A stretch of 64,000 bases of DNA. Source: Squalus acanthias (lineage: Eukaryota). Made by a program: the position numbers and the translations under genes. The stretch covers positions 54,746,001 through 54,810,000 of the forward strand of contig CM059437.1 in NCBI GenBank assembly GCA_030390025.1, in the 5' to 3' direction. Under the pieces are notes generated by a model, which was not told where the DNA came from, did no database searches, and worked only from the letters and a program-made list of their open reading frames with translations. This document shows, one piece after another, positions 8,968 through 30,118 of the stretch (the stretch's first letter is position 1; each line of letters opens with the position of its first letter).

Positions 8968-9039
8968 TCAGATACAGCTGGATTTCGCGATACTTGATTG
9001 AAGTGGGTTTGCCTGAGTCTCGTGTTTAACCACGCAGGA
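8968..9039 (-). pseudogene. IGLC: Ig light-chain C exon, 3' piece of the split exon (SCVVKHETQANPLQSSIAKSSCI*)
   Basis: Homologous to the last 72 nt of the C exons ending at 19427 and 55181; followed by a 3' UTR (~8575-8967) similar to 19030-19426, with minus-strand AATAAA at 8749-8754. Confidence 0.9.
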
Positions 9040-10310
9040 TACAACAGGTGCCAGCTCTGTGAACATGACAGTGGGGCTCACCGTGATGGAGCTTCTGCTG
9101 ACAGCTCTGACGGCTTCCATGGCAGCTCAATGGCTGCCATTTTACTTCTTGGGCCTAGTGTTGACTGGGGTGTCCAGATCATCGTATCACTCCTCCAGTC
9201 TGTTCTGTCACCGAGCCATAGGAGAGATGAGGTGTTGTCCCAGGAGAGTAGCCTTGGCTCAATGAGAGCAACACCTGCTCCCACGCCACCTTTTCCTCCA
9301 GTGCTCTTGTTAGACTAACTTAGCCAGCTGGCCCAGACAGCCCTCATCCACGCCGAGATGCTGCAATCTATATTCAGGTCCTCAAGGCTCAGAGCTGCTT
9401 GAGGGCATCCAACACAGCCATCTGAAGTGTTCTGAATGGAAGCTCAGCAGCCTTCCACTTCCGAAGCTGCAGCCACTAGCGGTACAACTCGTAGCAGCAC
9501 TAGTATAGGGCAACAAGCACAGAATATGACATCAATGGGTGGCACAATGTTGATTCCTTTCATTATACACTTCTTTAAGACAATTGCTGGAGTTTTATCT
9601 GGATTTGGTGTTGGTGTTGGTGTTAGTGAAGTGAGAGCGAAACTAATAAGGCTGGACTGTAGGAACGCAATCAGATTGTGCTAGTAATGATTGTGGTGAT
9701 AAGGATTGAGGGGGGGAATATGTATTGGGGCTGGGAGCGATGGTTCAGCTGAAGCACTTTTGGATGAATCGACCTCTGAGAGTTCTGGCAGCTAGCTGCG
9801 CTAGTGGTCGATGCTGCTCCTGCTCTTCCTCCTCCTGCTGAACTTCTTCCTGCCCAACTGGTGGTAAGGGCTGCTCTCTCATTATTGCAAAGTTATGCAG
9901 GACACGACCACAAATCTGGAAACACAGTCACGGCTGCAGTGCTCCTCCCGAACGATCCAGGTAGCAGAAGCGATGCCTGAGCAATTATATTTCTGGTAGT
10001 GGCCTGGCTCCTGTTGTAGGCCAGCTCTCTGTCTGTGCACACGTTCTTCACAGGGACCATGAGCCACGTCTGAAGGGGATAGGCCTTGTCGCCCAGGAGA
10101 CACCCTTTTTGAATTAAAGGCATCACAGAGGACTGGCTGCCAGAAAACTTGTCACGGAGCTGCCTAGCGCACTGCCTATGGTCGAAAACAACGATTTTAT
10201 TCCTACAACGCACAGGAAAAGCAACTGCACAAATAACATGAAATCGAATACAGCGATTATGGGCTTCTGCTTGGTTAGGAGGAAATAACTTTGTACAACC
10301 AGATATTGTC
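9040..10310. mobile_element. Degenerate Harbinger remnant (transposase C-terminal part on minus strand, probable Myb-gene last exon on plus strand)
   Basis: Minus-strand GCLLGDKAYPLQTWLMVP...YNRSQATTRNII; plus-strand QPSTSEAAA resembles the C-terminus of the Myb protein at 6356-7243. Confidence 0.65.
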
Positions 10311-10311
10311 A

Positions 10312-11266
10312 TAGAAACATAGAAACTTAGAAGATAGGAGCAGGAGTGGGCCATTCGGCCCCTCGAGCCTGACCCGCCATTTAATGAGATCATGGCTGAT
10401 CATGCAAATTCAGTACCCTGTCCCTGCTTTCTCCCCATATCCCTTGATCCCTTTAGCCTTAAGAAATATATTTAACTCCTCCTTGAATATATTTAATGAA
10501 TTGGCCTCAACTGCGTTCTGTGGTAGAGAATTCCACAGGTTCACCACTCTCTGGGTGAAGAAATTCCTCATCATCTCAGTCCTAAATGGCTTACCCCTTA
10601 TCCTTAGACTGTGACACCTGGTTCTGGACTCCCCCGCCATCGGGAACATCCTTCCTGCATCTAGTCTGCCTAGTCCTGTTAGAATTTTATAAATTTCAAT
10701 GATATCCCCTCTCATTCTTCTAAACTCGAGCGAATATAAGCCTAATCGACCCAATCTCTCTTCATCCATCATTCCTGCCATCCCAGGAATCAGTCTGGTG
10801 AATCTTCGCTGCAATCCCTCCATGGCAAGAACATCCTTCCTCAGATAAGGCGACCAAAACTGCACACAATACTCAAGGTGTGGTCTCACCAAGGCCCTGT
10901 ACAACTGCGGCAAGACATCCTTGCTCCTGTACTCGAATCCTCTCGCTATGAAGGCCAACATACCATTTGCCTTCTTAACCGCCTGCTGCACCTGCATGCT
11001 TACCTTCAGCGACCGGTGCACAAGGACGACAAGGTCTCATTGCACTTCCCCTTTTCCCAATCTATTGCAGTTCAGATAATAATCTGTCGTCCTGTTTTTG
11101 CCACCAAAGTGGATAACCTCGCACTTATCCACATTATACTGCATCTGCCATGCATCTGCCCAATCACCCAACCTGTCCAAATCATACTGGAGTTTCTCTG
11201 CATCCTCCTCACAGCACACACGCCCACGCAGATTTGTGTCGTCTGCAAACTTGGAGATATTACATC
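10312..11266 (-). mobile_element. CR1 LINE, 5'-truncated
   Basis: ORF2 C-terminus (10410-11021) and a TTCTATGT-type tail. Confidence 0.9.
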
Positions 11267-11271
11267 ATGCA

Positions 11272-12445
11272 AACAAGACATAGAATCTTACAGCGCAGAA
11301 GAAGGCTGTTCAGTCCATAGTACCTGTGCCGGGTCTATGAAAGAGCTATCCAATTTATCCCACTTCCTCTCCACTGCACTTTCTCCATAGCCCTGCAAAT
11401 TTGTCTTTTTCATGTATATATGCAATTCCCTGCTTCCACCACCCTTTCAGGCAGTACATTTCAGATCCTAAGAACGTGTTAAATCAATTTTCCTCATCTC
11501 CCCAGTGATTCTTTAGCCAATTATATTAAGTCGGTGTCCATTCGTTAGCGACCCTCCTCTCAGTGAAAATGCTTATTTTTAATTTACCCCTCATAATTTT
11601 GAACACCATTACTAAATCGACCTTTAACTTGCTCTGATCTAAGGAGAACAATCCTAACTTCCCTAGTCTCGCCTATTATTGAAGTCCCTCATACTTGGTA
11701 CTATTCTGGTAATCTCCTCTGCACTCTGTCCAAGGCCTCGACATCAACTCTAAACTGAGGTGCCTAGAATTGGACACAATACTCCAGCTGAGGCTCAACC
11801 AGTGGTTTATAAAGTTTTAGCATAACTTCCTTGCGTTTGTACACTATGCAGCTATATATAAAACCAAGTATCCCCTATAACTTTTTAACAGCCTTATCAA
11901 CTTGTCCTGCCGCCTTCAAATATCCCTGTTTGCGAAACCCCACGTATCTCTCTGTTCCTGCACCCCATTTAAAATTGTAACATTTAATTTATATTGCTTC
12001 TCATCATTATTCCTTTTAAAATGCTATCAATTTTTCAATTCAAAGCATTAAATTTAATCTGCACTGTGCCTTCACATTTCGCCCCTCTATCTATGCCCTC
12101 TTACTGTCTGTGACTATCCCCCTCACTGTTTATTGCATTTACAAGTTATGTGTCATCTGCAAACTTTGAAAGTAAGCCCCCTATACTCAAGTCCAGGTCA
12201 ATAATGTACTTCAAAAGAGCATTGTTTCTAATACAGACCCCTGGTTGATGCCACTGTACACTTCCCTCCAATCTGTAAAACAACCGTTCAACACTACTCT
12301 CAGCTTTCTATTTCTTAGACAATTTAGTGCCCAGGCTGCCATTACCCCATTAATCCCATGGGCTTCAATTTTGCTAACAAGTCTATTATGTGGCAGTTTA
12401 ACAAACGCCTTTTCAAAGTCTATATACACATCATCAACCGCACTA
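11272..12445 (-). mobile_element. Degenerate CR1 LINE 3' portion
   Basis: VYIDFEKAF, QGSVL motifs; CR1-type 3' UTR near 11280-11400. Confidence 0.8.
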
Positions 12446-13059
12446 CTCTCAGTCTGATCATTATTAAATATTAGCAATGAGATTAACATAACATTATTAT
12501 GATATCTATCTGACTTCTTACAGAGATCAGTATCAACAAAGAACACTAAAGGGATACAGAGTATGTGATAAGTGTAAAAGTGAATGTTGAAACCACGATA
12601 CTTTGCTGGACTGGTTTCAGTAAAAAGTGCCAGTGGAAGTGTAATTACATAAGAACGAAACGTAAGAAAGAGGAGCAGGGTTAGGCCATTTGACCTTTGA
12701 GCCTGCTCCGCCATTCAAGAAGATCATGGCTGATCTTCTACCTCATCAACACTTTCCTGCACTATCCCCATATTCCTTGATTCCCTTAATATTCAAAAAT
12801 CTATCGATCTCTGTCTTGAATATACTCAACGACTGTGCCTCCACAGCACTCTGGGGTAGAGAATTCCGAGGACGCAACACCCTCTGAGTGGGAGAAATTC
12901 CCCCTCATCTGAATCCTAAATGGCCTACAAATTATTCTGAGACTGTGACCCCTGGTTCTAGATGCCCCAGCCAGGGGAAACATCCTCCCTGCATCTACCC
13001 TGTCAAGCCGTGTAAGAATTTATATGGTTCAATTGGATCACCTCTCATTCTTCTAAACT

Positions 13060-15628
13060 ATGTATGTAAAGTATGTTAAAAGAAAAAGATTAATGAAGAT
13101 AAATGTAGGTCCCTTACATTCAGAAACGGGAGAATTTATAATGGGGAACAAGTAAATGGCTGAGCAGTTAAACATATACTTTGGTTCACAGAATAGGACA
13201 CAAATAACTTTCCAGAAATGCTAGGGAACCAAGGGTCTACTGAGAAGGAGGAATGAAAGGAAATTAGTATTAGTAAAAAATAGTGCAGGAGAAATTAATA
13301 AGGGCCAAAAATTCATCCCGGTGCGCGAGAGTACGCACTGCGTACTCTCGCGTATTCCCTCTGCAATTGCCGGTTTTCTGCATGCCCTGCGCATGCGCTG
13401 AAAACCGGCAATTGGTCTTTTGAAAAGGGGGCGGTTCCTCGGTGCATCGCGTGCGCACTACAGGCTGCGCGCACGCTGTGCACTTCATGCTTTGGATGCG
13501 CAGGTAAGTACTGAAGATTTTAGAAATGGAAAAAGGAGGAGTAAGAACCACTTTTAACAAGGTAAGTAGTGAATTAAGTATTTTTTTTTATTTTTTTAAC
13601 AGGTATATCTTTTTTAGAGACTTTAAAGACAGGTAAGTTTATTTTTATAACTTTTTAAAAGATTTTAAATTTTTTCAAAAATTTAATTTTTTATTTAAAA
13701 TGGTTAATTTATTTAACTATACTTATTTTATTAATGTGATGGTTTTTTTTAATTTAATTGAGGTTTAGCTGTTATTTTGGGGGGGTGTAAGATTCATAGA
13801 TTTCACAGCACGTATGTGACACTTATGAATGGAAGATGGTGTGCTGCCATTGGCTCTAACTGAGTCACGTGATCCCACAGCTCGCACGAATTCACTACGC
13901 CGGTGGGATACGCAAGCACTGCCCGGCTGATGTCTGGAACATCAAGTTCGTGCGAGCTGGATCTGAAAAAGCACAAGCGGAGTGAGAGATCGCGGGGAAG
14001 GCTTACCCCCGCGGGAACAGAGCGAGATCAATTTCTGGGCCAATAACACTGAAAGCCGATAAATCCCCAGGGCCTGATAATCTGCATCCGAGAGTACTAA
14101 AAGAGGTAGCCATGGAAATAGTGGATGCATTGGTTGTCATCTTCCAAAATTCGATAGCTTTTGGAACATTTCCTTCAGATTGGTGGGTGGCAAAGGTAAC
14201 CCCACTAATTAAAAAAGGAGATAAAGTCAAAACAGGGAACTACAGACCGGTTAGCCTAACATCAGTATTAGGGAAAATGCTAGAGTCTATTATAAAGGAT
14301 GTGATAATAGGACACTTAGAAAATATCAACGGGATTAGACAAAGTCAACATGGATTTGTGAAAAATAAATCGTGTTTGACAAACCTACTGGAGATTTTTG
14401 AGGATGTTACTGGTAGAATAGATAAGGGAGAACCAGTGGATGTGGTGTATTTGGATTTTCAGAAGGCCTTTGATAAAGTCCCACATAAGAGGTTAGTGTG
14501 CAAAACTTAAGCACATGGGATTGGGGGTAATATACTGGCATGGATTTAAAATTAGTTAACAAACAGAAAACAGAGAGTAAGATTAAATGGGTCTTTTTCG
14601 GGGTGGCAGACGGTGACTAGTGGGGTTCCGCAGGGATCAGTGCTTGGGCCCCAGCTATTCACAATATATATCAATGATTTGGATTAGGGAACCAAATGTA
14701 CTATATCCAAGTTTGCTGACGACACGAAACTAGGTGGGATTGTGAGTTGTGAGGAGGATGCACACAGGCTTCAAAGTGATTTAGACAAGTTGAGTGAGTG
14801 GGCAAATACATGGCAGATGCAGTATAACGTAGATAAATGTGAAGTTATCCAATTCGGTAGGAAAAACAGAAAGGTGGAGTATTTTTTGAAATGGTGATAG
14901 ATTGGGAAATGTTAATGTACAGAGAGACGAGGGTGTCCTTGTACACCAGTCACTAAAAGAAAACATGCAGGTGCAGCAAGTAGTTAGGAAGGCAAATGGT
15001 ATGCTGGTCTTCATTGCAAGAGGATTTGAGTACAGGAGCAAGGATGTCTTATTACAGTTATACAGGGCTTTGGTGAGACCACACGTTGAGTACCATGTGC
15101 AGTTTTGGTCTTCTTACCTAATAAAGGATATACTTGCCATAGAGGGAGTGCAGCGAAAGTTCACCAGACTGATTCCTGGGATGACAGGACTGTCGTATGA
15201 GGAAAGATTTGGTCGACTAGGCCTGTATTCATTAGAGTTTAAAATAATGAGAGGGAACTCATCGAAACGTATATAATTCTGACAGGGCTAGAGAGACTGG
15301 ATGCAGGGAGGATGTTTCCCCTGGCTGGGGGGTCTAGAACGAGGGGTCACAGTCTCAGGATACGGGTTAAGACATTTAGGACTGAGATGAGGAGAAATTT
15401 CTTCACTCAGAGGGTGGTGAACCTGTGGAATTCTCTACCACAGAAGGCTGTGGAGGCCAAGTCACTGAATATATTTAAGAAGGAGATAGATAGATTTCCA
15501 GACACAGAAAGCATCAAGGGGTATGGGGAGAGAGCAGGAATATGGTATTGAGATAAAGGATCAGCCATGATCATATTGAATGGTGGAGCAGGCTCGAAAG
15601 GCTGAATGGCCTACTCCTGCTCCTATTT
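13060..15628 (+). mobile_element. CR1 LINE nested in the minus-strand CR1
   Basis: RT fragments NYRPVSLTS, YLDFQKAFDKVPH, FFTQRVV; CR1 3' UTR ending CCTACTCCTGCTCCTATTT. Confidence 0.88.
13301..14042. mobile_element. Harbinger-type MITE
   Basis: Imperfect TIRs GGGCCAAAAATT / AATTTCTGGGCC; GC-rich subterminal arms around an AT-rich core; interrupts CR1 ORF2. Confidence 0.7.
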
Positions 15629-17974
15629 TTCTAACTCTAGAGAATATAAGCCTCGTCTACTCAATCTCTCCTCATAGGACAATCCCCCCATCCCAGGAAC
15701 CAGTCTGGTGAAACTTCGTTGCCCTCCCTCTATGGCAAGTATATCCTTACTTCGGTAAGGGGACCAAACCTGTGCGCAATACTTCAGGTGTGGTCTAAAC
15801 AGGGCCCTACATAATTGCAGTAAGATGTCTTTACTCTTATACACAAATCCTCGTGTAATAGAGGCCAACATACCATTTGCTTTCATAATTGCTTGCTGTA
15901 CCTGCATGTTAACTTTTGTGATTCGTGTGCAAGGACAACCAGGTCCCACTAAACATTTCCCAATCTATTACCATTTAAAAAATACTCTGCTTTTCTATTT
16001 TTCCTACCGAAGTGGATAATTTCACATTTCTCCACCTTATATTCCATTTGCCATGTTCTTGCCCACTCACTTAGTCTATCGATATCCCCTTGAAGCTTCT
16101 TTGCATCCTCCTCAATACTTACATTCCCACCCAGCTTTGTATCATCAGCAAACTTGAATATAATGATTGGGATGTAGATTGTAAATAGCTGAGGCCCAAG
16201 CACTGTGCCCCACTAGTTACAGCCTGCCAATCCAAAAATGATCCGTTTATTCCTACTCTCTGTTTTCTGTCCGTTAACCAATTCTCAATCCATTCTAATA
16301 TATTGCCCCCAATCCCATGAGCCCTAATTTTGTTTAATAACCTCTTGTGTGGCACCTTATCGAATGCCTTCTGAAAATCCAAATACACCACATCCACTGG
16401 ATCCCCTTATCTATTCCGTTATTTACAACCTCAAACAACTCTAACAGATTTGTCAAACACGATTTCCCATTCATAAATCCGTGTTGACTCTGCCCAATCC
16501 TATTATTATTTTCAAAGTGCCATGTTCCCACGTCCTTAACAATAGATTCTAACGTTTTCCCTACTACTGATGTCAGGCTAACTGGTCTGTAGTTCCCCGT
16601 TTTCTCTCTCCCCCACTTTCTTAAATAGTGGGATTACATATGTTACCGTCCAACCCGTGGGAACCATTCTAGAATCTATGAAATTTTGGAAAATGACAAC
16701 CAGTGCATCCACTATCTCTATAGCCACCTCATTCAAAACCCTAGGATATAAACCATCAGGTCCAGAGGATAAATCAGCTTTCAGTCCCATTAATTTCACC
16801 AGCACTATTTTTTTACGAATAATAATTTCTTTCAGTTCCTCATTCTCGCTGGAGCCTTGGTTCTCCACTATTTCATGGAAGTTTTTTGCGTCCTTTACTA
16901 CATGGTTATTAATTAACCCTTTCTCTTTGCACAATACTACATCTAAAATGACCTGCACCCTAGTTGGTTCCTCAACATACTGATCTAGAAATCTATCTTG
17001 CATGCATTCCATGAATTCGTCCTCCACACTATTACTGCAAATTTGGTTTGCCCAGTCTATATGTAGATTAAAGTTCCCCCTGTATTACCCTTGTTACATG
17101 CACCTCTAATTTACTGATTCATACACTGCCCTTCATTACAACTATGGTTTGGAGGCCTACAAACAACTGCCACCAATGTTTTCTGCTCCTTGCTGTTTCT
17201 TAGCTCCACCTAAACTGATTCTACTTCTTGATTTTCGGAGCTAAGATCCTTTCTCTCTACTGTCTTTATCCCATCCTTTATTATCAGGGCTACGCCTCCT
17301 CCTTTCCCATTTTCTTCTAAAAGTTAAGTATCCTTGAATAATTAGTTCCCAACCTTGGTCACTTTGCAACCATGTCCCCGTTATGTCTATTAGATCAAAC
17401 CTGTTAATTTCTATCTGCGCTATTAATACATCTATTTTGTTGCGAATGCTTCGCGCATTCAGATATAGTGCCTTTAGCTTTGACTTATTTCTATTTTTCC
17501 CTGATGTCACCTTAGTCACAGATGCCTTATTGCCTTTGTTACTCTCTCTGACCCTCCCTGACCCACTCTGCTTATTTTTATCCAAAACTCTACTCTGCTC
17601 TGGAGCCGTGACATTTCTCTCGCTGCTTTTAAATTTACTCTTTCCTGAAGCCTCCCACCCACCTCCCTTCATTAGTTTAAAGCCCTGTCTACTGCCCTAC
17701 ATATTCGGTTCGCCAGGGCACAGATCCCAGTCCGGTTTACTTCCATTCTGAGTTATTGCACGTAGCACCTTCCTTGGTGTTAAGAATCGCTGAACAGGGA
17801 TCAAAAGGAATCGAATCTTATTGAAACAGAAATCTTGCAAAGCCTGAATTCGCATCACGCAAATACCTGGACAACCACATTGTGTCACTGAATCTGTGTC
17901 ACCAGATGATTAATTAAAACGTACACTATGCTCAGCCAATTATTGCCAGAAACAATCTACACGGATTGTTTAAC

Positions 17975-18020
17975 GCCACTAAAACAGATTATCTGGTCAT
18001 TATCACATTGCTGTTTGTGA
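17975..18020 (+). mobile_element. DeuSINE (AmnSINE/SacSINE-like) core fragment
   Basis: CACTAAAACAGATTATCTGGTCATTATCACATTGCTGTTTGTG resembles the Deu-domain consensus as recalled; not aligned. Confidence 0.5.
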
Positions 18021-18029
18021 CATAAACGA

Positions 18030-18962
18030 TTCGAACTGGGGAAGAGGAAGGACAATTTTTAAAAATTGCAGATGACACCAATTTGGGGGGATATATTTGA
18101 TACTGAAGAATACTGCGACAAAATACAAGATCTTAGTAAACTTGCAGAATAGGCGTGTAAATGGTGAATGGATTGTATTACAGATAAGTATGAGGTGGTG
18201 CTTTCTGGTAGGAGGAATAAGAAGGCCACAAACCCCTTGGAAAATAAGAGTCTAAATGGAGTAATGGAGCAAAGGGATCTAGGGGTATAAATTCACAAAT
18301 CATTAAAAATTTGCAACGCAAGTTAGCAAGGCCATAACAAATGCAAACAAAGCACTGTGGTTCATTTTCAGAGGAATGGAATTGAAAAGCAGGGAATTTA
18401 TGTGAAACTTCTATAGAACTTTGGTTAGACCACACTTAAATGTGTGTACAGTTCGGATCTCCATATTACAAAAAGGGTATAGGCACTGGAGAAGTTGCAA
18501 AAAGATTTATAAGGATGATACCAGAACTGCGAATTTATAACTGTCACGAAGGACTGGTCATGCAGGTGCTCTTTTCCCTAGAAATTAAAAGGCTGAGGGG
18601 TGAACAAATAGAGGTCTTTAAATTTATGAAGGGGTTTGATACCATAGAGTAGAGGAGATGTTTCCGTTTTTGGGGCGTCCAAAACTGGGCGCCATAAATA
18701 TGATTGTCGCTTATAAATCCAATAAAGAATTCAGGAGAAACTTCTTTGCCAAGAGTGTAGCTACCGCATGGAGTACTTGAGGCGAATAGCACAAACGTCT
18801 TTAATATGAATCTAAATACGTCCATGAGGTTGAAAGGAATAGAAGGATATGCAGATAAGGTTAGATGAAGTAGGTTAGGAGAAGGCTCATGTGGAGCAGA
18901 AACACCGTCACAGACCAGTTGGGCCTGATGGCCTGTGCTGTAAATTCTATGTAATTCTATGA
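18030..18962 (+). mobile_element. Degenerate CR1 LINE 3' portion
   Basis: ADDT and CVQF.SP remnants; ATTCTAT-type tail. Confidence 0.75.
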
Positions 18963-19426
18963 ATTTAAACAAATGTGATTAAAATATATATTGTAAGATA
19001 TCTTTCCCAAAATGTCAAATTAATAGTAATCTATCGTGTCTGCAACCTTGCTATTCCGACTGATTTCACTGACTTGACATACAATGTCCAGAATGTCATA
19101 AAGAATATAACCTCCTTATTTAGCCACATTTAAAACATTGCTATGGATTGGTACAGAGGAATAGGTCAGAAAAGAATAACAGCACCTGAGATAATGGCAG
19201 AGTCATTTTATTACACTACGGTATGTGTAACGTTACACTGAAACTTTGATCAGTTCAGGGTTTACACACTGTAAAATACAGACAGCGGAATACAGCCGAC
19301 AAACTGCACATCTGTTGTGATTTGAAATGTTACACTTAAAATCAAACATGTACTATCTGAATACGGAATTTATTTTTAAAGGGAAGTTAATAATGGTATA
19401 ACAAATCAATGCATAAGATTCTTGAA

Positions 19427-19749
19427 TCACATACAGCTGGATCTGGCGATACTTGTTTGAAGCGGGTTTTCCTGAGTCTCGTGTTTAACCACACAGGAGT
19501 AAAGCTCGTGTGAGTTCCACTCTGAGGCTGGCAGAGTCAGATAACTGCTCACACTGAACGTGTTGTCCGTCTCCTGCTGGATCCGACTGGTCTCAACACC
19601 ATTCCCTCTGACACTGCCATCGACAGTCCACTCAATCTCCACAGCGCCCGGGTTAAAACCATTCACCAAACACACCAAAGTCGCCGTGTTCTTTGCTGCG
19701 ATTTGAACGGATGAAGGCGGAAGGACAGACACCGAGGGGGCCCGCGGAT
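19427..19749 (-). CDS. IGLC: Ig light chain gene A, constant exon (C1-set domain)
   Basis: PSVSVLPPS, ATLVCLVNGF.PG, W, FSVSSYLTL, YSCVVKHE, terminal Cys; acceptor TTTCAG; 323 nt, phase 1; minus-strand AATAAA at 19207-19212. Confidence 0.95.
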
Positions 19750-20144
19750 CTGAAACGAAGAATCCAATTAAAGAAGATCCATACTAAATTGAAATAAAAA
19801 GTCGGAATCAATGTGTTACTTTCTTCAAATCTTACAATAAAATTCGGCGTCACTTTACAAACGTATATGAAATGTAATATAACGGAAGCTCATCAGTGTC
19901 AATTCTCAAATAACAGGGGCCCGCAGTTCTAGAACGTTTATAACCTGAGAACATTTTCCTATTTTTCCTACATGGAAAGGAACGTGTAACAAATATTTCC
20001 ATGGAAATATGATCCAAACTTTGTGCATATATTATAAATCGAATTTAATATCTGTCCGCTAAGACATAATTTTTCTTTCAGTTTTGTACCATTTCATTTC
20101 CCCGTTAAACTTTAGCGCGTCGTTATAAATGTTTCCACATTTCA

Positions 20145-20612
20145 CAGTCATGGAATCTCACAGCACAGGAGTCCATTCGACCCATCGTGCCTGTGCCGGC
20201 TGTTTGAAAGAGCTTTCCAATTAGTCCCACTCCCCTTCTCCTTCCCCATAGCCCTGCACATTTTTCCTTTTCAAGTATTTATCCAATTCCCTTTTGAATG
20301 TTACTATTGAATCTGCTTCCACCACCCTTTCAGGTAGTGCATCCCAGACCATAACAATTTGCAAATAGACAAATTTCTCCTCATCTCCACCCTGGTTCTT
20401 TTGCCAATTACCTGCTCGTGCAAAAAGTTGCTCCTTATCTGCGGTATCAAAACCCTTCATAATTTAGAACACCTCGTTATATCTCCCTTTAATCTTCTCT
20501 GCACTAAGGAGAACAATCCCAGTTTCTCTAGTCTCTCTATTTAACTGAAGTTCCTCATCTCTGGTACTACGGGTAAATCCCCTTTGCATCCCCTCCAAGA
20601 CCTTGACATCAC
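20145..20612 (-). mobile_element. CR1 3' fragment in the J-C intron of gene A
   Basis: W.ALPERVVEA...FKRELDKYL motif and CR1 3' UTR. Confidence 0.8.
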
Positions 20613-21302
20613 ATTTGTGAAAGAACATGGTCAGAAAATATTTTTTTTTAACTATCACTGGGCACACAGTATTACATCGAAATTACTGGTCCTACTCAAT
20701 CTGCCATAGACTTTGTGTCTCAGGAGCTGCGATTTAAAGAGAATGCAAAAAGCAATAAAGCCGAATTTGGGGTAAATATTGGAACCAATAGTGACTACAA
20801 AGTTACTGTAATGTTCAGCTCAAACACGCTAATGAATTTACTAATAAGCTCGATTCGTGCTTCTTGCTCAAATTTTGCACTACTTTTGACGAAAATATTG
20901 GACTAATATCTGGGCTTGTGTACCATCACTGCTATGGCCGCTCTGCTCGGCTCGCAATAGCTGTTTGGAGACATCTTCGGGGTCAATGTGTCACAAAAGA
21001 TGTAATTAAAGAGAAACAGGCTACAACAAATAAGGCTGTTATTGTGAATAATATTATCCCAATAATAACATCAATATGAAAGTAATGCCAATAATATTAA
21101 ATATTAATACTCCTGTGATAAAACAATTACATATAACCCAGTGTAAGAATGTTGAAGCCGGACTGTCATCATCTCCTGACTCTTTAGATGACCATTCGCG
21201 CCGACCATATGTTACAAGCTGTCAATAACAAACCCTCGGTAAATGCTTTATGTAATGTAAAGCACCGGAGAAAAGGCTGAAACGTTTATTTTTTTTAATT
21301 AA

Positions 21303-22119
21303 AGCACTGCCGCGATTTAATAGAATGGTAGAATTAGAGGCGGGGTCGCTTCAAATGGTTCTGGCATTGAGGCATCACGTCAGCTGCAGCGGCGCGTCTC
21401 ACTAATACCAGGTTTGTCCGGGTCGGTTTAAGTATCTATTGCAATTCTGAGGCGTTCGCCTTGGAACCCAGAACTTCACTTTGCTTTCTATACAATTTGG
21501 AGGCTGAAACTGGGAGAAGTCCTGAAGAACCACCGACCCCTATTGTCATAGTTGCTATAATCCCCCGGCAGCGCCCGGAGTTTAGCTGAACTTTCTGGTA
21601 TTGAAATATCTGGAGTCCCGTGGGATTATTCAGCAGGTTTTACTGCCAGTTTAAATTATTGTCGAAACACTAAGACTTTGACATTTGTACCAGAGATGTA
21701 TTCTTAATGTAACAACTGATAATATAAATTAAGATTTTTGCTGTTTCTTGAAAGCTAATTTCACCCTGATGTAGTCGAATAACCACGTCAAATAGCGATA
21801 GAGTATCCACATTTTTGATAATATTACTCCACTGACTAACTCTAATCACAGAACCAGCAGCAAAGCGCAATGGAGTGAGTATAAGAGCAGGTACAAAAAT
21901 CAGAAAAGCTATTTCGAGACATTATTCACACAAAATTATCGATAGGAAGATAACAACCCCTTAACTTGTTAAAAATAGATACCCTGACAATTGGATGAGA
22001 ATCATGTACTGAATGGTTTTCACTCAGTTATGAGACGAGTGGGAGAGAGTTACAACAAGTCGCTACACTATCCTCCCGCAGTCTCAATTCGAGAATGGTG
22101 ATTAAATCGCGGCAGTGCT
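21303..22119. mobile_element. Non-autonomous DNA transposon, Kolobok-like
   Basis: Perfect 19-bp TIR AGCACTGCCGCGATTTAAT flanked by TTAA at 21299-21302 and 22120-22123; AG...CT termini. Confidence 0.7.
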
Positions 22120-22968
22120 TTAATGTGAATGCATTAGGTGTCGATTTGAAACTTTTCAATTTGTGTCTATAGACTTTTACCGAGAACTTATTCTATGGGG
22201 CTATAATGGCCGGGTGTAAGCCAGTCTGAAAATTACGCGCGGCTCACAGAATCATAGAATTGTACAGCTCCGAAGGAAGCCGAATTCTCCCGCCCCAGCA
22301 CTTTGATAGATCTGTCCACTTAGTGCGATTCCCATAACTTTCTTTTGTTATTTTTTACATGTTTATCAACTTCCCTTTTAAGTGCGTTCTTTTAGTAATG
22401 CTGTTAAATTTATGTCCTCTGGTTACCGACTGACCGATCAGTGATAATTGTTTTTTTAATTTGCTGCAACTGAATGACTCATGATTCTGAACATTTCTAG
22501 CAGATCACACAGCACACTTCGAGTGAAATTAGCTTCTCTCCTCTCTTGACTTAACTAAAACCTATCGGTACCAGTATAATATTAAAAAATGGCTTCTGTT
22601 ATCTCTCCAAGGCGTTGACACCTCCCTAAAATCGGGCGCACTTTCTGTTTTGCTAGCTCTTAAATATCACTGGTCGCTGTTCCACAACTTCGGTATAAAT
22701 ATATTTTGAGGCAAATAATCTTGAGTTGCAGTAATTCAGTCTACCAATAAATTTCTTTCAATGGATTTTTGGTATTTCATTCGCAGTGTTAGTAATGTTA
22801 GGGAACAGTTTGATGCGCGATTTGGAAACCGAACAGTAAAAAAGCTTGACGCGATGAGAGACTCGGATTCGGATATTTTTTGATCGACGGGATTTAGACA
22901 AAAAAAACAAAAATCGAAAACTGGTAGCTGACAAACCCAAAGTTCCGCATTGCGAATAATTTACTTAC

Positions 22969-23304
22969 TGCCCAGGTTCAGCTTGGTTCCTCTCCCGAAA
23001 AAGATATAATAGGGACTGGTACGCAGAACAGAGCAGTAATAATCGGCGGCGTCCTCCGATTGCACGTTGGTGATGGTTAAATGCATCCTCGATGAGTCCG
23101 CAGACCCGGTGAATCGATCTGGAATCCCCGAAGGTCTGCTGCTCCCATACCAAACAAGCACAGGGGCACTGCCGGGTTTCTGCCAGTACCAGCTGCTGTA
23201 GCTGCCTATGCTGCCTTCGGATATGGTACAAGTGATTTTGACGGTTTTTCCCGGGGATGTTGAGATGGACGGTGGCTGAGTCAGGACAGGATCCGCGTTT
23301 GTAC
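22969..23304 (-). CDS. IGLV: Ig light chain gene A, germline-joined VJ exon (lambda-like/type II)
   Basis: [25 protein letters not shown]...WYWQKPG...[28 protein letters not shown]; V runs in frame into J with no RSS; CAG acceptor and GTAAGT donor. Confidence 0.95.
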
Positions 23305-23447
23305 CTGGTGAAATAACAAGTTATTGATTAGTCACAATTTTTGCCCTTCGAATATTGCTTATAATTCAGGTCTATTCAACTCAAGCACAAGAAAAACTCA
23401 AGGCAATGTAAAAAGCAGCGATATTGAAGGTTACGTCCTGTACTTAC

Positions 23448-23496
23448 TTTGGAGACAGAACATCAGTGCGGCGAGAACTCGAACCCATTCAGTCAT
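23448..23496 (-). CDS. Ig light chain gene A, leader exon (MTEWVRVLAALMFCLQ)
   Basis: Hydrophobic 49-nt exon with GTAAGT donor; spliced L-VJ-C totals 708 nt, 235 aa. Confidence 0.9.
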
Positions 23497-23619
23497 GGTG
23501 AAGTTTCTGGTGAAGATCTGAAACAAAATATTTCCTGACACGAATGTAGTTCTGAGCTCTTTCTAAACCTCTCCTTAAGAAGATTCAAACTTCGCAACGT
23601 CATTGATTATTAATTATTC

Positions 23620-23627
23620 ATGCAAAT
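23620..23627 (-). promoter_or_regulatory. Ig octamer ATTTGCAT of gene A promoter
   Basis: Perfect octamer ~125 bp upstream of the ATG; TTAAGGAGAGG TATA-like motif shared with gene B lies between. Confidence 0.85.
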
Positions 23628-23919
23628 ATCCATCCACATGACCTCGCGCTATAGGAGTCCAAGTATTGCGTTGACTGGCATTTGCGCGATGCACATTCCA
23701 GCCATTAAAAGAGAAACAAAGTCAAAGCCACAGAATAAAACACGAGAATGGTTGAATGTAGCAAATTAAAAGGTGAGGTGAAAAAAGGAGGCTTGGGTTT
23801 TAGAGGCCTGAAGATTATAATAGCGAGGGGAAGCTGAGGGCGGTAATCGGTTCAATAGCTGTGGGGTCCTCGGGAAGAGGAACTGGAGAAGGAGATTTTA
23901 AGGTGCGATTTCATTTGCA

Positions 23920-23920
23920 C

Positions 23921-23965
<45 letters not shown>

Positions 23966-23978
23966 GATAGAGAGAGAT
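23920..23978. repeat. (GATA)n microsatellite
   Basis: About 11 GATA units followed by a GA-rich end. Confidence 0.95.
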
Positions 23979-25131
23979 ACCGACCGACCGACCAGGAAAC
24001 ATTCGACACTTGCAGAGAATTAACCGTTTGGAGAAAAATATGGAAGCGGACACGGAGCTTTTTGCAAGAAATTTTATTAATATAGCTGAAAGATCTATTT
24101 GAGGTCGCAGGAGAAACTGAGGTTCACTATACCAATATATGGAATGACTAGGGGCTGAATGAATCAAATATAACAGTTGTTTGTTTCGACTTGTGATAGA
24201 TATAAAATACTGCAGCGTGAAATCCCGCTGTGGGATGTTATGGTTGAACCTTTGTACGAAATTCCATTGCTTCCTATTTGAATGGGAGAGTTAACCCTTT
24301 CAAAGCAGCAATCACAAATACATTTCAATCAAATATGTTAAATGTCAGCGCGATTTCACTGCAACTGTCTTTGAAAAATTGAATAAGTAAAATTGTCATT
24401 GTCCAGCTGAAGGTCACAGAAGAGAGCAAGCTGTAACGATTCAGTCATTGCACTGGGAGAGTACTGACGGTTGTGAGTTCAGATAGGGACCCATAAATAA
24501 ATGTCTGCGAATCTTTATATACATAGGCTTAAATCAGCCTTATTATTTTATGCTCTTATTTACCTTCACAATTGAAGAGGACCAAATCAATAAAATTAGA
24601 CAATACTTGATGAGAATTTTCTGTAAAGCTACTCTCGACAAATAGTTTCCTATATTTCCTGTTTTAAAAACACATTTTTGCCGTAAACTTTCCTCACGAT
24701 GAGTTAATTCCTGTTATCCAATTGAAGCAATATTTTCCAGATTGGTGGTCTGGAGAGTGTATAATTTAATAGGTTAACAGCTTGTTGTGGTAAAGGTTAT
24801 TATGGAATGGTTAGTACAGAGTGCTACAGTAAAAGAAGAAATGTAGAAAACGCAGTGTTACATTGGGCGTGGTTCGGCAGAAGGCTTGGAACATCCGATG
24901 TAAAATTATGAAAAATAATCCAGAAGTCAGTAGTAATATCTGTTAATTATGGGTTTATTCTGTGACATGGAGTCGAATACATGTTTTAGATTAGGTTGTT
25001 GGGATTCTTTAGGCTAAGCTAATCAGCAGGAGGTGTCACTAAAAGGCAATTAGGAAGCATCAAAATGATTATATAAAGAAATATGGTTAGTTTGGGAGAC
25101 AAATTGTCTGGTTTAAGTTGTTATTATTCAT

Positions 25132-26725
25132 GGTAACGGTGTGACCTTTTAGCCACAGAATTGTCTTATCTGTACTATTCAGAAAGGAAATGAACTGTCA
25201 CATTCCAGTGAGTATGAAGTATATGTGGTGCAACATTGTCACCTACTGGTATAGTAGCATATGACACACAAGGTTCACACTTAGAATTAATGGCATGGAC
25301 CGCCTGTTTTACACAGGTCTATTGAAGGCAATACAACTGAATGTCGAGCAGGGAGTGTAATGGGCGGCCAAATACCATACCACCGGTTCTGCGCTAACGC
25401 CCAATAACTTCGAATCTATTGGGGTAGATATTCGATACAGGTGGCTATAACTGTCCGTGATATATCATTTGGTAGCGGTGTGGTCTTTTAAACATGCAAT
25501 TGCCTTATCTGTACAATTCAGAAAGGAAGTGAAATGTCACATTCCAGTGAGTGCGAAATATATGTGGTGCCACGGTCACCTACTGGTATATCAGTATCCA
25601 AAACGGAAAATCTGTCGGAGAGGGAGATGGACCCAGGGGACTCCTGCACTACCTTCCTAGCTCTTTTACTCTGTCTGGTGGTCACCCATTCCCTGTCTGC
25701 CTGTGCACTCTTGACCTGCGGTGTGACCACCTTGTTAAACGTGCTATCCACGAAGATCTCAGCTTCGCGGATGCTCCACAGTGACTCCAGCCACAGCTCC
25801 AGCTCCAAAATGCAAATTTCGAGTAGCTGCAGCTGGAGACACTTCAAGCACATGTGTTCGCCCTAGAGACCTAAAGTGTCCCTGACTTCCCACATAGCAC
25901 AGGAGGAGCACTCCACGCTGCCAAGCTGCCCTGCCATGCCCTACCCTTAATTTACTCCCTTTTAATTAAAGAATATTAAATACACTAGGGACCTTACTTC
26001 CCTTTAAACACTACTTACTCTAAACTAGAGACCTTACTTTTACTTTAATGACTGGAATGTAGAAATACTGTAGAAATACTCACCGCTGGTTCTCTGTCCC
26101 CTCTTGTGCAGCTTTTTAGCTCCTGCTCTCCTTGAAGCTGACAAAGATAGAAAAAGAAAGGAACACCCTCACTCACCAAACTCGCAGCTTAACACTCTGT
26201 TCCGATCTGCACTCCTTGACACACTGCACTCTAGCCTCCCTTATTTATACTGCTGAGATTTAAATAAGTGAGCTCTCTGGCAGTTACAGAACCAGATTAG
26301 ACCACATATTAATTAGTTACTCTCACCTGCTCTCCAGCACAGACCTTGCTTAGCCCTGTCCAAGCCTGGAAGAAACTTAAAACTTGAAACAGTAAATTTA
26401 AATGCTAATTGCAAGCACACAAGACTAGAATTTATAAAAATAAGAGATTAACCTTTAAGATTCACTCCCTCACTCACCAAACTCGCAGCTTAACACTCTG
26501 TTCCAATCTGCACATATGACACACAACGATCACACTTAGAGTTACTGGCATAGACCGCCTATTATACACAGGTCTATTGAAGGCAATGCAACTGAAGGTC
26601 GAGCAGGGAGTATAACGGGTGGCCAAATACGATACCGCCGGTTCTGCGCTAATGCCCAATAACTTCGAATGTATTGGGTAGATGTTCGATACAGCTGGCT
26701 ATAACTATCCGTGACCTATCATTTG
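25132..26725. repeat. Tandem duplication of a ~340-bp unit, second copy interrupted
   Basis: 25132-25471 matches 25471-25590 plus 26513-26725. Confidence 0.85.
25591..26512 (-). mobile_element. CR1 5' fragment (5' UTR + ORF1 N-terminal zinc finger/coiled coil)
   Basis: ORF 25518-25853 (CLKC...FNKVVTP...WVT...LSDRFSVL) is homologous to CR1 ORF1 at 58233-59006. Confidence 0.75.
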
Positions 26726-28224
26726 ACTCATACTGCAGTGCCCCTCCCAATCTGCCCAGCTAGCGAAAGTGTGCCTTTAAGGCCCTGATGGCCCTCCCAA
26801 TGACCAGTCTAGTAGAGGAATTTGCCTCCTTGTAGTGCTCCTCTGCCATTATTGGACCATTCTTACTGCGAGAACAATGCATTGCATAGGGGATAGGCTT
26901 TGTCATCCAGAAGCCATTGATGTGATTTTCTTCCCTGATGAGGTCAGCGTGTTCGTATGAAGGCTTCTCTTCATGTGGTCACACATAATAGGTACATTCA
27001 CGGATTGGAAGCCCCTCCTGTCGATGTAGTTGAGAGGTTGTTGTGTGGGAATGCGCACAGCAGCATGCTTGTCCTCGATTGTAGCTTTGTAAAAACAAGC
27101 AACCCAGTAAAAGTAGGTGGCCATATCTTGCTATGTTGCCAAAGGTGATGAATTTGCCTGCACTCCTGCAAAGGGCGTAAACAACATAATGAGTGCACAG
27201 CCGCTACTACTGCCAGGATGCTATTGCAGAGATTGCTGACGGGTTCCTAGAATTACGCTGTGACACCAAGGGTGAGGGCGGTTATTACCTGCATATCCAC
27301 AGAGAAAGCATTGTGTGTAGATGAGCATGGCTACAGCTCGTCCTGCGGTAGGTAACAGAGCTACCCTATTACCTCGTTGGTAAAGTACGCGCATCTTATT
27401 CACAACTCCTCATAAAAGTCCTCATATGGAGTAATATCTGGTAGGCTGCATCTTCTTAAAAGTTGCCTAAATCTTCTTTGCTCCATCATGTGCTGTTCCT
27501 GCTCCTCCATGATGAAAGTATACAGGGGTATGTCTACAGGGAATGTCATCTACAGGAGCCTGATACTGAGAGAGTTCCCTCGTCGTGGTTCATACAGAAT
27601 GACACAGACAGAAGTTTTAATTCATGACAATTAGCTAATGAAGGGAGTTTCCCTTCTGCACTTTATACCCATGCTCATTATGTGTTCGCAGGAAATAAAC
27701 CAGGTGATCAATATACAATGGAAAGACAAATTTCGAAAATATACTTTCACAATCCAGGCAGGAAAGACCCTTATCTATCCGACCATTAGCGAAATTCTTT
27801 ATGTTCTTTATCTTAACGCGGCCACATTAATAAGTACAAGGGAGCCTTCTTAAATTATGGTCCAGTGGACTACAAGTTTGAAACTGCTAAGAGGAAGACC
27901 GATCTAGGGTAGCAATGCAATTCATTGGTAACCAGGGCGACTGTTTTAGGAGAATGAATGAGGCAAATTTTGTTCTAGAATTTTGCACTTTGTGGATCGC
28001 AGTCCGAAATTACATCCATTTTTTTCTGAAAGCATAAACTACGGTGAACCACGCGGGTAGGAATTGCTTTAGTCACTGTGTAATGCGATATCCCAAATAT
28101 TTCCTTGGGTTTTCCTGGTGAATTTATAAGCATAGGAGACAAGCTTTAATTTAGAAGGTTTACGAGTTCACTACAAATACTAAATGGGGGGGATCTTTGC
28201 AAATGCATTTATAATGTCCGTCAG

Positions 28225-29525
28225 GATCGGACAAAGTCAACATGGATTTACAAAAGGTAAAATCTACTGGAATTTTTTGAGGATGTAACTGGTAGAATAG
28301 ATAAGGGAGAACCAGTGGATGTGGTGTATTTGGACTTTCAGAAGGCTTTTGATAAGGTCCCGAATAAGAAATTTGCGTGCAAAGTTAAAGCACATGAGAT
28401 TGGGGGTAAGGTACTGACTTGGATAGAGAACTGGTTGGCAGAGAGGAAGCAAAGAGTTAGAATAAACTAGTCTTTTTCCGAGTGGCAGGCAGTGACTAGT
28501 GGGGTACCGCAGGGATCGGTGCTAGGACCCCAGCTCTTCACAATATATACTAATGATCTAGACGAGGGAAATAGATGTAATATCTCCAAGTTTGCAGACG
28601 ACACAAAGCTGGGTGGGCATGTGTGCTGTGAGGAGGATGCTGAGAAACTCCAGTATGATTTGGACAGGCTGGGTGATTGGGCAGATGCATGGCAGATGCA
28701 GTATAATGTGGATAAATGCGAGGTTATCCACTTTGGTGGCAAAAAACAGGAAGACAGATTACTATCTGAACGGCAATAGATTGGGAAAAGGGGAAGTGCA
28801 ACGAGACCTGGGTGTCCTTGTGCACCAGTCACTGAAGGTAAGCATGCAGGTGCAGCAGGCAGTTAAGAAGGCAAATGGTATGTTGGCCTTCATAGCGAGA
28901 GGATTCGAGTACAGGAGCAAGGATGTCTTGCTGCAGTTGTACAGGGCCTTGGTGAGACCACACCTTGAGTATTGTGTGCAGTTTTGGTCACCTTATCTGA
29001 GGAAGAATGTTCTTGCCATGGAGGGAGTGCAGCGAAGATTCACCAGACTGATGCCTGGGATGGCAGGAATGACGTATGAAGAGAGATTGGGTCGATTAGG
29101 CTTATATTCGCTAGAGTTTAGAAGAATGAGAGGGGATCTCATTGAAACTTATAACATTCTAACAGGACTAGACAGACTAGATGCAGGAAGGATGTTCCCG
29201 ATGGCGGGGGAGTCCAGAACCAGGGGTCACAGTCTAAGGATAAGGGGTAAGCCATTTAGGACTGAGATGAGCAGGAATTTCTTCACCCAGAGAGTGGTGA
29301 ACCTGTGGAATTCTCTACCACACAAGGCAGTTGAGGCCAATTCATTAAATATATTCAAGAAGGAGTTAGATATATTTCTTAAGGCTAAAGGGATCTAGGG
29401 ATATGGGGAGAAAGCAGGGACAGGGTACTGAATTTGGATGATCAGCCATTATCTCATTAAATGGCGCAACAGGCTCGAGGGACGGAATGGCCTACTCCTG
29501 CTCCTATCTTCTATGTTTCTATGTC
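28225..29525 (+). mobile_element. CR1 LINE, 5'-truncated
   Basis: [17 protein letters not shown]2 C-terminus, TTCTATGT tail; same subfamily as 10312-11266. Confidence 0.9.
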
Positions 29526-29675
29526 CCACAAATCGTGATCAGATTAATTCATAATCTGTGGTGCGATCAAGTTGATTGAGCGACACCCGCTGTTAATCTT
29601 GCTTTGGCTTGCCCCACGAGAGAAAATATTTTATTTGTATCTACCTATCGAATTGCATAATCATTTGAAATATAT

Positions 29676-29931
29676 CAGGAGAAAAGCTCGTGTGAGTTCC
29701 ACTCTGAGGCTGGCAGAGTCAGATAACTGCTCACACTGAACGTGTTGTCCGTCTCCTGCTGGATCCGACTGGTCTCAACACCATTCCCTCTCACACTGCC
29801 ATCTACAGTCCACTCAATCTCCACAGCGCCTGGATTAAAACCGTTCACCAAACACACCAGGGTCGCCGTGTTCTTTGCTGCGATTTGATCCGATGAAGGC
29901 GGAAGGACAGACACTGAGGGGTCCTGTGGAT
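29676..29931 (-). pseudogene. IGLC: Ig light-chain C exon, 5' piece of the split exon
   Basis: PQDPSVSVLPPS...WNSHELFS, then homology stops abruptly; intact TACTAG acceptor. Confidence 0.92.
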
Positions 29932-30118
29932 CTAGTAAAAATGCAAGAGTGAGCGAAAATTCCCTCTTAGTTGCATATGAACAGTCGAAAGTCAATCTTG
30001 GGTTTTCTATTTTTTAACATTCAGTTGCTGTACAGACATATTAGCAATACATTACAATGGAGGTTTAACAGTGTTTATTTAACACACATAAACACTGCTT
30101 AGTCCTCAGCTAGAGTAT

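Follow-up and report, generated by a model that had tools for sequence, protein, structure and literature searches.

There is no settled account of how the many V-J-C miniclusters in sharks and rays are multiplied and dispersed, and in the literature searched the clusters appear as duplicated units, with no description found of a cluster nested in the exon of another. Gap filling and replication-fork switching have been proposed for sequence capture in animals (PMC8277862); a 5-bp flanking duplication is reported for RAG and Transib transposition (PMC8355894), and germline RAG activity has been inferred for the germline-joined genes of sharks (PMC2193156); Cryptons, for which movement in circular form has been proposed, lack TIRs and LTRs and carry terminal direct repeats of 4-6 bp that are regarded as crossover substrate (PMC3212892); and Ty1 integrase inserts arbitrary, non-cognate DNA with a 5-bp target duplication, provided that it ends in TG...CA (PMC2939329).

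The locus analysed here lies in a 64-kb stretch of DNA (the window), in which genes A and C share the organization of the cartilaginous-fish light-chain miniclusters: octamer, leader, joined VJ exon and single C exon. It looks as if one of them, the entire gene A, was placed as DNA, seemingly in a single event, into the C exon of a paralogous copy, B. The parts of the interrupted exon, its flanks and the features of gene C are the following:

29676..29931, minus strand: 5' piece of C exon B, lambda-type, 256 nt, with an AG acceptor and in frame (Pfam C1-set, E = 3e-21)
8968..9039, minus strand: 3' piece of C exon B, 72 nt, through its stop codon
29676..29680, no strand: CAGGA, right copy
9035..9039, no strand: CAGGA, left copy, also found in the paralogous contigs that match the left end of the insert
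29932..30079, minus strand: remnant of the B J-C intron, about 148 bp; homology to the gene A intron stops at 30079
8556..8967, minus strand: 3' flank of B, 412 bp, with AATAAA at 8916-8911; 83.5% identical to the gene A 3' flank
43798..44169, plus strand: germline-joined VJ frame of gene C, head-to-head with A and B
54859..55181, plus strand: intact C exon of gene C, differing from that of gene A at 5/323 positions

The 29931-29676 piece has a stop-free translation (PQDPSVSV...SHELFS), and the 9039-8968 piece reads SCVVKHETQANPLQSSIAKSSCI before its stop. The two overlap in TCCTG alone on the minus strand, that is, CAGGA on the plus strand at 9035-9039 and 29676-29680; the repeat is exactly 5 bp and the neighbouring bases differ between the copies. 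The sum of the pieces (256+72-5 = 323 nt) equals the length of both intact C exons (19749-19427, minus strand, and 54859-55181, plus strand). BLAST of the pieces against the 64-kb window gave matches at three places only, their own site and the two intact exons, to which the 256-nt piece is 94.5% and 96.1% identical and the 72-nt piece 90.3% and 91.7%. Moreover, 19904-19494 of gene A aligns with 30079-29676 at 81%. Since the pieces are exactly complementary and each keeps its own intron or 3' flank, they represent one exon that was cut once. No V or J belonging to B was found within the window, and the host is thus a C-exon relic without V, not a whole cluster.

The interrupting segment and its contents are:

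9040..29675, no strand: inserted segment, 20,636 bp, with gene A in TE-rich DNA, of which about 6 kb lie upstream and about 10 kb downstream of the gene
23620..23627, minus strand: octamer of gene A, ATTTGCAT
23448..23496, minus strand: leader exon of gene A
22969..23304, minus strand: germline-joined VJ exon of gene A, V-set, followed by a GTAAGT donor
19427..19749, minus strand: intact C exon of gene A, 323 nt
19374-19369, minus strand: polyA signal of gene A, AATAAA
9040..10316, minus strand: old Harbinger relic, DDE_Tnp_4 and part of a second ORF, ending at the segment boundary about 1.6 kb before the end of the element (by collinearity)
10317..11266, minus strand: 3' end of a young LINE, 5'-truncated, 95.2% identical to the copy at 28574-29524
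28223..29524, plus strand: 3' part of a LINE, RVT_1, with its 3' end 151 bp inside the right boundary
29525..29675, no strand: right-end 151 bp of the segment, without similarity elsewhere in the window

Gene A sits entirely within 9040-29675 and, judged from exons checked singly rather than in a joined model, seemingly is a functional germline-joined VJ-C gene of lambda type. It fits a cartilaginous-fish germline-joined light-chain cluster in having a leader, a fused VJ exon free of RSS, one C1-set exon and signals for splicing and polyadenylation, and its nearest named protein, at 89% identity, is the 'immunoglobulin lambda-1 light chain-like' protein of Mustelus asterias. The original prediction of a C exon split at a CAGGA overlap, with pieces adding up to 323 nt, was borne out by coordinates, translations and BLAST, and its placing of the whole of gene A in 9040-29675 held once octamer, leader, VJ, C and AATAAA had been located. 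It had also described a cluster inside the C exon of another cluster, of which the C exon interrupted by gene A stands, but the host has no V or J in the window.

The segment begins with TACAAC and ends with ATATAT (TA...AT). No TIR or LTR was found at its ends, the best end-to-end local alignment scoring 10, where shuffled sequences reached 9.6 on average and 18.5 at most, and no poly-A. No CACAGTG or CACTGTG heptamer lies within 120 bp of either junction, and no CAC or nonamer at the termini. The end alignment at null level and the heptamer scan agree with the earlier statement that the ends lack TIR, LTR, poly-A and RSS. The segment is overlapped by 53 stop-to-stop frames of 75 aa or longer; Pfam identified RVT_1 in six of them, DDE_Tnp_4 in one and Ig domains in two, and integrase, tyrosine recombinase, RAG/Transib, helicase and polymerase families in none (0/53). 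The left end had further been said to cut through a Harbinger remnant; homology is demonstrable from 10093 to about 9232, and the last ~190 bp are collinear and in an open frame (E = 6), so that this is only probable. The left boundary thus probably falls in sequence collinear with an old Harbinger ORF and would not be the terminus of an element.

Several carriers were considered and rejected or disfavoured. An LTR retrotransposon or integrase product would be at odds with the missing terminal direct repeat, with ends TA...AT instead of TG...CA and with the 0/53 frames for integrase, which also sets the segment apart from the Ty1 case, as no integrase occurs in the scanned frames. Identity as a Crypton is disfavoured by the lack of a tyrosine recombinase in the same frames (0/53, at least 75 aa, Pfam), which may yet have been supplied in trans. 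Helitrons insert at an A|T site without duplication, Polintons have 6 bp and TIRs, and Harbingers TWA and TIRs; none of them suits a segment that is flanked by a 5-bp repeat, lacks TIRs and, in the frames scanned, encodes neither a helicase nor a polymerase nor an intact transposase.

Read evidence came from contigs of two runs (X1 and X3) of one sample and concerns the left junction. This junction is present in the contigs: 9039|9040 is bridged by X1 record 2 (170 nt, 0 differences, 9005-9173) and X3 record 11 (267 nt, 6 differences, 9005-9270), with a short side of 35 letters in each. Contigs of the sample differ by about 1% elsewhere, which suggests another individual or haplotype than that of the assembly. 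Besides, both runs contain contigs of a paralogue, which are known by their alignment coordinates and not their letters. X1 record 3 (527 nt) matches from the end of the contig, at 9232, to 9035 with 15 differences in 198 and continues with 329 unlike letters, and X3 record 12 (496 nt) likewise matches from its end, at 9197, to 9035 with 12 differences in 163 and continues with 330; that they run leftward beyond 9035 is deduced from these equal unaligned remainders. The paralogous contigs are about 92% identical (~7.6% diverged), and their match starts at 9035 and not at 9040, so it includes the left CAGGA. An extension of 5-of-5 letters into CAGGA has odds of about 1 in 1000 by chance. Sites at which a CAGGA end could pair are common, with 197 occurrences of CAGGA/TCCTG in the 64 kb. 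As far as the alignments indicate, CAGGA was probably present at the breakpoint in the source before the insertion, which would point to a 5-bp microhomology junction rather than a transposase-type staggered cut. In the bin 9171-9337 the summed depth of about 51-66 (X1 and X3) is what the window copy plus about one paralogue would give, and it suggests a duplicate of low copy number, not a TE family. The change 9132 G>A is present in X3 record 12 and absent from X1 record 3, hence more than one paralogue may exist. Exon B shows about 2-4 clearly B-derived amino-acid changes compared with P0001-P0003; in view of so few changes against the ~7.6% divergence, the paralogue may predate the insertion and would then not be the direct donor.

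The reading that we favour, with a probability of about one half, involves no transposition and no RAG reaction, but an insertional (dispersed) segmental duplication through MMBIR/FoSTeS or synthesis-dependent repair. At a DNA break or stalled replication fork in the C exon of the lambda-type light-chain copy B, repair would have drawn on a paralogous part of the light-chain locus, from which about 20.6 kb, comprising gene A and its TE-rich surroundings, were copied. The broken end ...CAGGA-3' would have paired with a CAGGA in the source and primed the copy, giving the 5-bp microhomology of the left junction, and the new strand would then have been joined, with no homology, to the far side of the break. 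The second copy of CAGGA could have arisen when a short staggered break was filled in, or when the strand re-entered 5 nt behind its point of exit. The outcome would be the destruction of B and the gain of one working light-chain gene at this place. For the right-hand CAGGA, copying requires an extra step. That the paralogue represents the source, that copying was the mechanism and that the steps came in this order are our inferences. With duplications of the MMBIR/FoSTeS type the locus has in common a kilobase-scale paralogous copy at a break, arbitrary ends, a probable junction microhomology of a few bp, a small duplication where the segment went in and what may be a retained relative of the source; it differs from them in its target, an exon of a paralogous gene, in its cargo, an entire antigen-receptor gene, and in that the donor is putative.

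Less probable, although still worth serious consideration, is a true target-site duplication, in which the fill-in of a 5-nt staggered break in the C exon was accompanied by the capture, through end joining, of a free 20.6-kb fragment, linear or circular, from another light-chain cluster. Such an event would be expected to leave an exact 5-bp direct repeat in a complete exon, and a segment without transposon ends that stops at arbitrary positions, but the CAGGA beside the left end of the insert in the paralogous contigs would be left unexplained. The claim that a cluster was put as DNA into a staggered 5-nt break in a C exon is accordingly retained for the placement as DNA in a paralogous C exon, and weakened for the staggered break, as the paralogue shares the 5-mer.

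Doubtful is the integration of a circular copy at the short shared core CAGGA, whether by microhomology recombination of the Campbell type or by a Crypton-like tyrosine recombinase provided in trans. A single 5-bp core would account for both copies of CAGGA as well as for the one at the paralogue boundary, and the Crypton features described above (PMC3212892) are partly matched. However, unlike a Crypton, the segment has neither a recombinase gene in the frames scanned nor a known second copy with the same two ends, and its left end probably lies inside a dead Harbinger; a circle opened inside that relic might continue it at the other end, and the right 151 bp show no such continuation, a weak test. 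Slightly more doubtful still is the broader view that light-chain clusters are moved as discrete units by an enzyme of 5-nt stagger or CAGGA core, RAG-like or a tyrosine recombinase in trans, possibly by way of a circular intermediate, with the paralogue as a second insertion and not a donor.

It is quite unlikely that two separate rearrangements (duplications or deletions) in different C paralogues left pieces that are complementary by coincidence. In its 3' flank B is closer to A (83.5%) than to C (70.6%), in a short intron stretch of about 130 nt the A-C identity is 76% vs 70% for B-A, and B has no V, all of which could be read in this sense. Nevertheless, two independent breaks within a few bases, in correct order and orientation, are estimated at less than about 1%, the intron comparison spans only those ~130 nt, and the B-specific differences, 10/256 in the 5' piece and 6/67 in the 3' piece, do not differ significantly in rate (Fisher p = 0.11).

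An assembly artefact at one junction is more improbable again: the locus is repeat-rich and the read support is for the left junction, but contigs of two runs bridge that junction, and a chimeric join would not yield a precise 5-bp duplication without exon loss.

Very improbable is a RAG- or Transib-type transposition of the cluster, a role that the original prediction had entertained and that the results do not support: the 5-bp size and the inferred germline RAG activity in an Ig locus (PMC8355894 and PMC2193156) are set against termini without CAC, heptamer, nonamer or TIR, junctions free of heptamers for 120 bp, the lack of such a gene in the frames scanned and a supposed duplication that is common to the paralogue and probably to the source. 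Equally remote is LINE-mediated retro-insertion, in which the exon received the reverse transcript of a read-in RNA that stopped 151 nt beyond the LINE at 28223-29524; the 3' end of this plus-strand LINE lies 151 bp from the right boundary, but a 20.6-kb cDNA would be required, the junction has neither tail nor poly-A, the LINE ends at 29524 and not at the boundary, and an independent LINE of the same young subfamily lies near the other end in opposite orientation. LINE retrotransposition or transduction as the origin of the segment was rejected on the position of that 3' end, the missing poly-A and the 20.6-kb insert.

Under segmental duplication, the locus keeps both junctions of one cluster-copying event at base resolution, in which a working cluster, together with about 16 kb of DNA around it, was copied into a neighbouring paralogue, making one gene and killing another. 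The suggestion that such a structure is a footprint of cluster amplification is plausible for one insertional segmental duplication, but no dedicated mechanism is shown. If the microhomology reading is true, clusters can disperse by ordinary errors of replication or repair, and RAG or transposons are unnecessary; if other clusters share the same ends and the 5-mer, the opposite conclusion holds. If clusters were instead moved as discrete units by an enzyme, their multiplication in cartilaginous fish would be at least partly transposition-like.

One further element adjoins the locus just 3' of the flank of B:

4362..8535, plus strand: full-length, high-copy Harbinger, DDE_Tnp_4 and Myb_DNA-bind_5

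This Harbinger belongs to a different family from the relic inside the segment and, according to read depth, is far more abundant.

The C exon that hosts the insertion, here called B, is present in the window as two collinear pieces on the minus strand, a 5' part and a 3' part:

29931-29676, minus strand, C exon B piece 1 (5' part, 256 nt), found by BLAST and translation
9039-8968, minus strand, C exon B piece 2 (3' part, 72 nt), found by BLAST and translation

Piece 1 translates without stops (PQDPSVSV...NSHELFS) and its frame matches the Pfam C1-set family (E = 3e-21), and piece 2 reads SCVVKHETQANPLQSSIAKSSCI before a stop. The only bases common to both pieces are TCCTG on the minus strand, which on the plus strand reads CAGGA (9035-9039 and 29676-29680), and 256+72-5 equals 323 nt, the size of the intact C exons of gene A, which lies between the pieces, and of its plus-strand relative, gene C. 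The direct repeat is exactly five bases long, because the bases adjoining its two copies are unlike. BLAST with both pieces matched the window at three places only, namely B itself and the C exons of genes A and C. Coordinates, translations and BLAST therefore agree with the original prediction of two collinear pieces that overlap by 5 bp and sum to 323 nt. Upstream of piece 1 there is an AG acceptor with about 148 bp of homologous intron, reaching to 30079, and the stop codon of piece 2 is followed by AATAAA (8916-8911) and 412 bp of 3' flank with 83.5% identity to that of gene A. The prediction had also taken the host to be another whole cluster, which does not hold for the window: homology to the other clusters ends 148 bp upstream of the exon, and B has no V gene, since a regular-expression search and tblastn with the gene A V frame over the whole window returned only the following:

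23320-22964, minus strand, V gene of A, found by pattern search and tblastn
43798-44169, plus strand, V gene of C, found by pattern search and tblastn

The B exon differs from both the A and C exons at 16 positions, 10 of which are synonymous (P = 0.003-0.007 under neutrality), and a rough by-eye polarisation against three related proteins (P0001-P0003) places about 2-4 amino-acid changes on B's own line. This pattern suggests that selection maintained B as a C gene through most of its past and that its disruption is comparatively young. A protein search for the empty site with the piece-1 frame (106 aa) gave three matches among seven candidates, none of them B-like or intact with the flanks of B. 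P0001 and P0003 are shark lambda-type light-chain fragments that public databases list under Aeromonas veronii (contig of 652 bp) and Salmonella enterica (contig of 410 bp) as hypothetical proteins; evidently the bacterial assemblies were contaminated with fish DNA or cDNA.

The inserted segment (9040-29675, 20,636 bp) encloses gene A, whose exons were treated singly, so that the structure below consists of separate exons and is not a spliced model; the C exon of gene C is added:

23627-23620, minus strand, octamer of gene A
23496-23448, minus strand, leader of gene A
23304-22969, minus strand, fused VJ exon of gene A with GTAAGT donor (V-set, E = 3e-17)
19749-19427, minus strand, intact C exon of gene A, 323 nt
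19374-19369, minus strand, AATAAA of gene A
54859-55181, plus strand, intact C exon of gene C, 323 nt

The closest named protein is the 'immunoglobulin lambda-1 light chain-like' protein of Mustelus asterias (89% identity over the C part), which makes gene A a lambda-type gene from an elasmobranch. Between A and C, the C exons differ at 5 of 323 nt, that of gene C showing no private difference, against about 75% identity between the V exons and 67-76% between the flanks, which suggests that C exons have been homogenised between clusters by gene conversion or strong selection. A LINE fragment common to both genes occupies the corresponding position in each, some 400 bp upstream of the C exon (20146-20611 and 54041-54550), and its insertion is therefore older than the A/C duplication; the homology of B stops short of this position. 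The remainder of the segment consists of LINE fragments and Harbinger relics. Fifty-three stop-to-stop frames of 75 aa or more overlap it, and Pfam identified RVT_1 in six of them, DDE_Tnp_4 in one and Ig domains in two. A 214-bp direct repeat inside the segment (25258-25471 and 26513-26725, 89.7% identity), with about 1 kb between its copies in which the frames have no Pfam match, is a candidate small element, LTR-like or of another, unclassified type.

An old Harbinger relic occupies the left 1.28 kb of the segment in reverse orientation, with homology in the transposase and a second ORF from 10093 down to about 9232; its last 190 bp are collinear and have an open frame, but show no significant similarity to the reference element in the window, so that a cut through the relic, as the original prediction suggested, is no more than probable. 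Collinearity places the end of the relic about 1.6 kb before that of the element, and the left boundary is thus probably an arbitrary break and not a terminus. Comparison of the first and last 600 bp in direct and inverted orientation revealed no TIR or LTR (score 10 versus a shuffled mean of 9.6 and maximum of 18.5), and the right 151 bp (29525-29675) match nothing elsewhere in the window. An inverted 950-bp pair (10317-11266 and 28574-29524, 95.2% identity) was rejected as terminal repeats, because it represents LINE 3' ends of one young subfamily with unlike 5' truncations, 1277 bp and 151 bp inside the boundaries. To the left of the segment, a 905-bp non-autonomous Harbinger derivative (3458-4362) is arranged head-to-tail with a full-length 4.2-kb copy (4362-8535), both terminal parts being common to the two (90% and 83%). 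Contig depth over the full-length copy from 7000 onward reaches hundreds of thousands, which marks the family as very abundant and probably recent.

Five of nine sequencing runs contained at least half of the sampled words, and Logan contigs were aligned to positions 7000-12000: those of X1 and X3 come from one sample, those of X5 from a second sample of the same organism, and those of X7 carry another organism label. Other contigs of the X1/X3 sample are about 1% off the window and its runs contain only 0.59 of the words, so that the sample probably represents a haplotype other than the assembled one. Two contigs, placed by coordinates only, align to the left end of the insert and break at 9035: X1 record 3 (527 nt) from 9232, with 15 differences in 198 aligned positions and 329 letters unaligned, and X3 record 12 (496 nt) from 9197, with 12 in 163 and 330 unaligned. 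On these coordinates, the equal remainders show both contigs extending beyond 9035 on the left, where their sequence no longer resembles the window; under the opposite reading, the alignment break and the contig end would have to shift together by about 35 bases. The records point to a paralogue of the left end, about 92% identical, located elsewhere in the sampled genome and without continuation into piece 2. According to the alignment coordinates it would also have CAGGA preceding 9040, and a chance 5/5 extension through these bases has odds of roughly 1 in 1000. The summed depth at 9171-9337 is about 51-66 (X1, X3) versus 21-34 for single window-type contigs, an excess that leaves room for about one paralogue, compared with up to hundreds of thousands over the adjoining high-copy Harbinger and LINEs; hence we read it as a low-copy duplicate, the putative donor or the donor's sister, rather than a repeat-family member. 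Since 9132 G>A occurs in X3 record 12 and not in X1 record 3, there may be two paralogues; the only X5 contig aligned at 9132 carries the paralogue-type letter. At 7.6%, the divergence of the paralogue seems older than the modest decay of B would imply.

Provided that the source had CAGGA at its breakpoint, five bases of microhomology mark the left junction. This is what copying during replication or repair (MMBIR/FoSTeS, synthesis-dependent gap filling) typically leaves behind, and it is unexpected for a transposase. We favour, at about even odds, a copying event in which a break in B's exon would leave an end in ...CAGGA-3'; this end would anneal to a CAGGA within the region of a paralogous cluster and prime 20.6 kb of copying, after which the new strand would be rejoined to the other break end without homology. 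That end would keep its own CAGGA, through fill-in of a staggered break or through synthesis coming back in 5 nt behind the point at which it had left. Pairing sites are plentiful, the window containing 197 occurrences of CAGGA/TCCTG. For sequence capture in animal genomes, the proposed mechanisms are gap filling and fork switching (PMC8277862). Tandem duplication was rejected as the origin of the left junction, since the downstream homology of B and A covers 484 bp only and not a 10-kb unit.

A true target-site duplication at a staggered break, with end-joining capture of the segment, was the interpretation originally predicted. The exact 5-bp repeat agrees with it, but the CAGGA common to the paralogue is left unexplained, and we consider this account unlikely, though a serious competitor. 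Integration of a circle at a 5-bp core, Crypton-like in form, is considerably more doubtful. Like Cryptons, which according to PMC3212892 have no TIRs, use 4-6 bp direct repeats as crossover substrate and are proposed to form a circle, the segment has no TIRs and a 5-bp direct repeat; however, the 53 segment frames contain no match to integrase, tyrosine recombinase, RAG/Transib, helicase or polymerase families. Circular permutation was sought by comparing the right-terminal 151 bp with a Harbinger-relic continuation, and neither tblastx nor blastn gave a match, a weak result since 9040-9231 also fails to align to the in-window Harbinger. Coincidence of separate rearrangements is highly improbable; the 10 differences in piece 1 and 6 in piece 2 give rates that do not differ significantly (Fisher p = 0.11), as one common history of both pieces predicts. 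Misassembly is even harder to credit: the left junction, 9039|9040, is bridged by X1 record 2 (170 nt, 9005-9173, no differences) and X3 record 11 (267 nt, 9005-9270, six differences), each with a short side of 35 letters, and no bridge appeared among the matches listed for X5 and X7. The earlier suggestion of a RAG role is close to untenable: the 5-bp repeat size agrees with RAG/Transib transposition as described in PMC8355894, but the segment has no RSS, no CACAGTG/CACTGTG heptamer lying within 120 bp of either junction. LINE-mediated insertion is given equally little credence, and the segment ends have no poly-A. Integrase-mediated insertion of foreign DNA would produce a 5-bp duplication but requires TG...CA ends (PMC2939329), and the segment runs from TACAAC... 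to ...ATATAT.

As a class of event, insertional duplication by microhomology is known, and full-text literature searches covering main texts returned no report of an Ig cluster nested in the C exon of another. Germline-joined clusters are established and credited to germline RAG activity (PMC2193156), and the genomic distribution of miniclusters is described as not well known (PMC12227049). The locus offers a clean, base-resolved footprint of cluster dispersal, which would gain far greater weight if other clusters had matching ends and the matching 5-mer. Elsewhere in the window, a G/T-rich low-complexity tract (37136-37546) produces long spurious open frames on both strands, and a 280-bp inverted pair (40118-40397 and 62906-63185, 99.6% identity), which overlaps similarity to a LINE 3' end, may represent two very young LINE tails or a recent local duplication.
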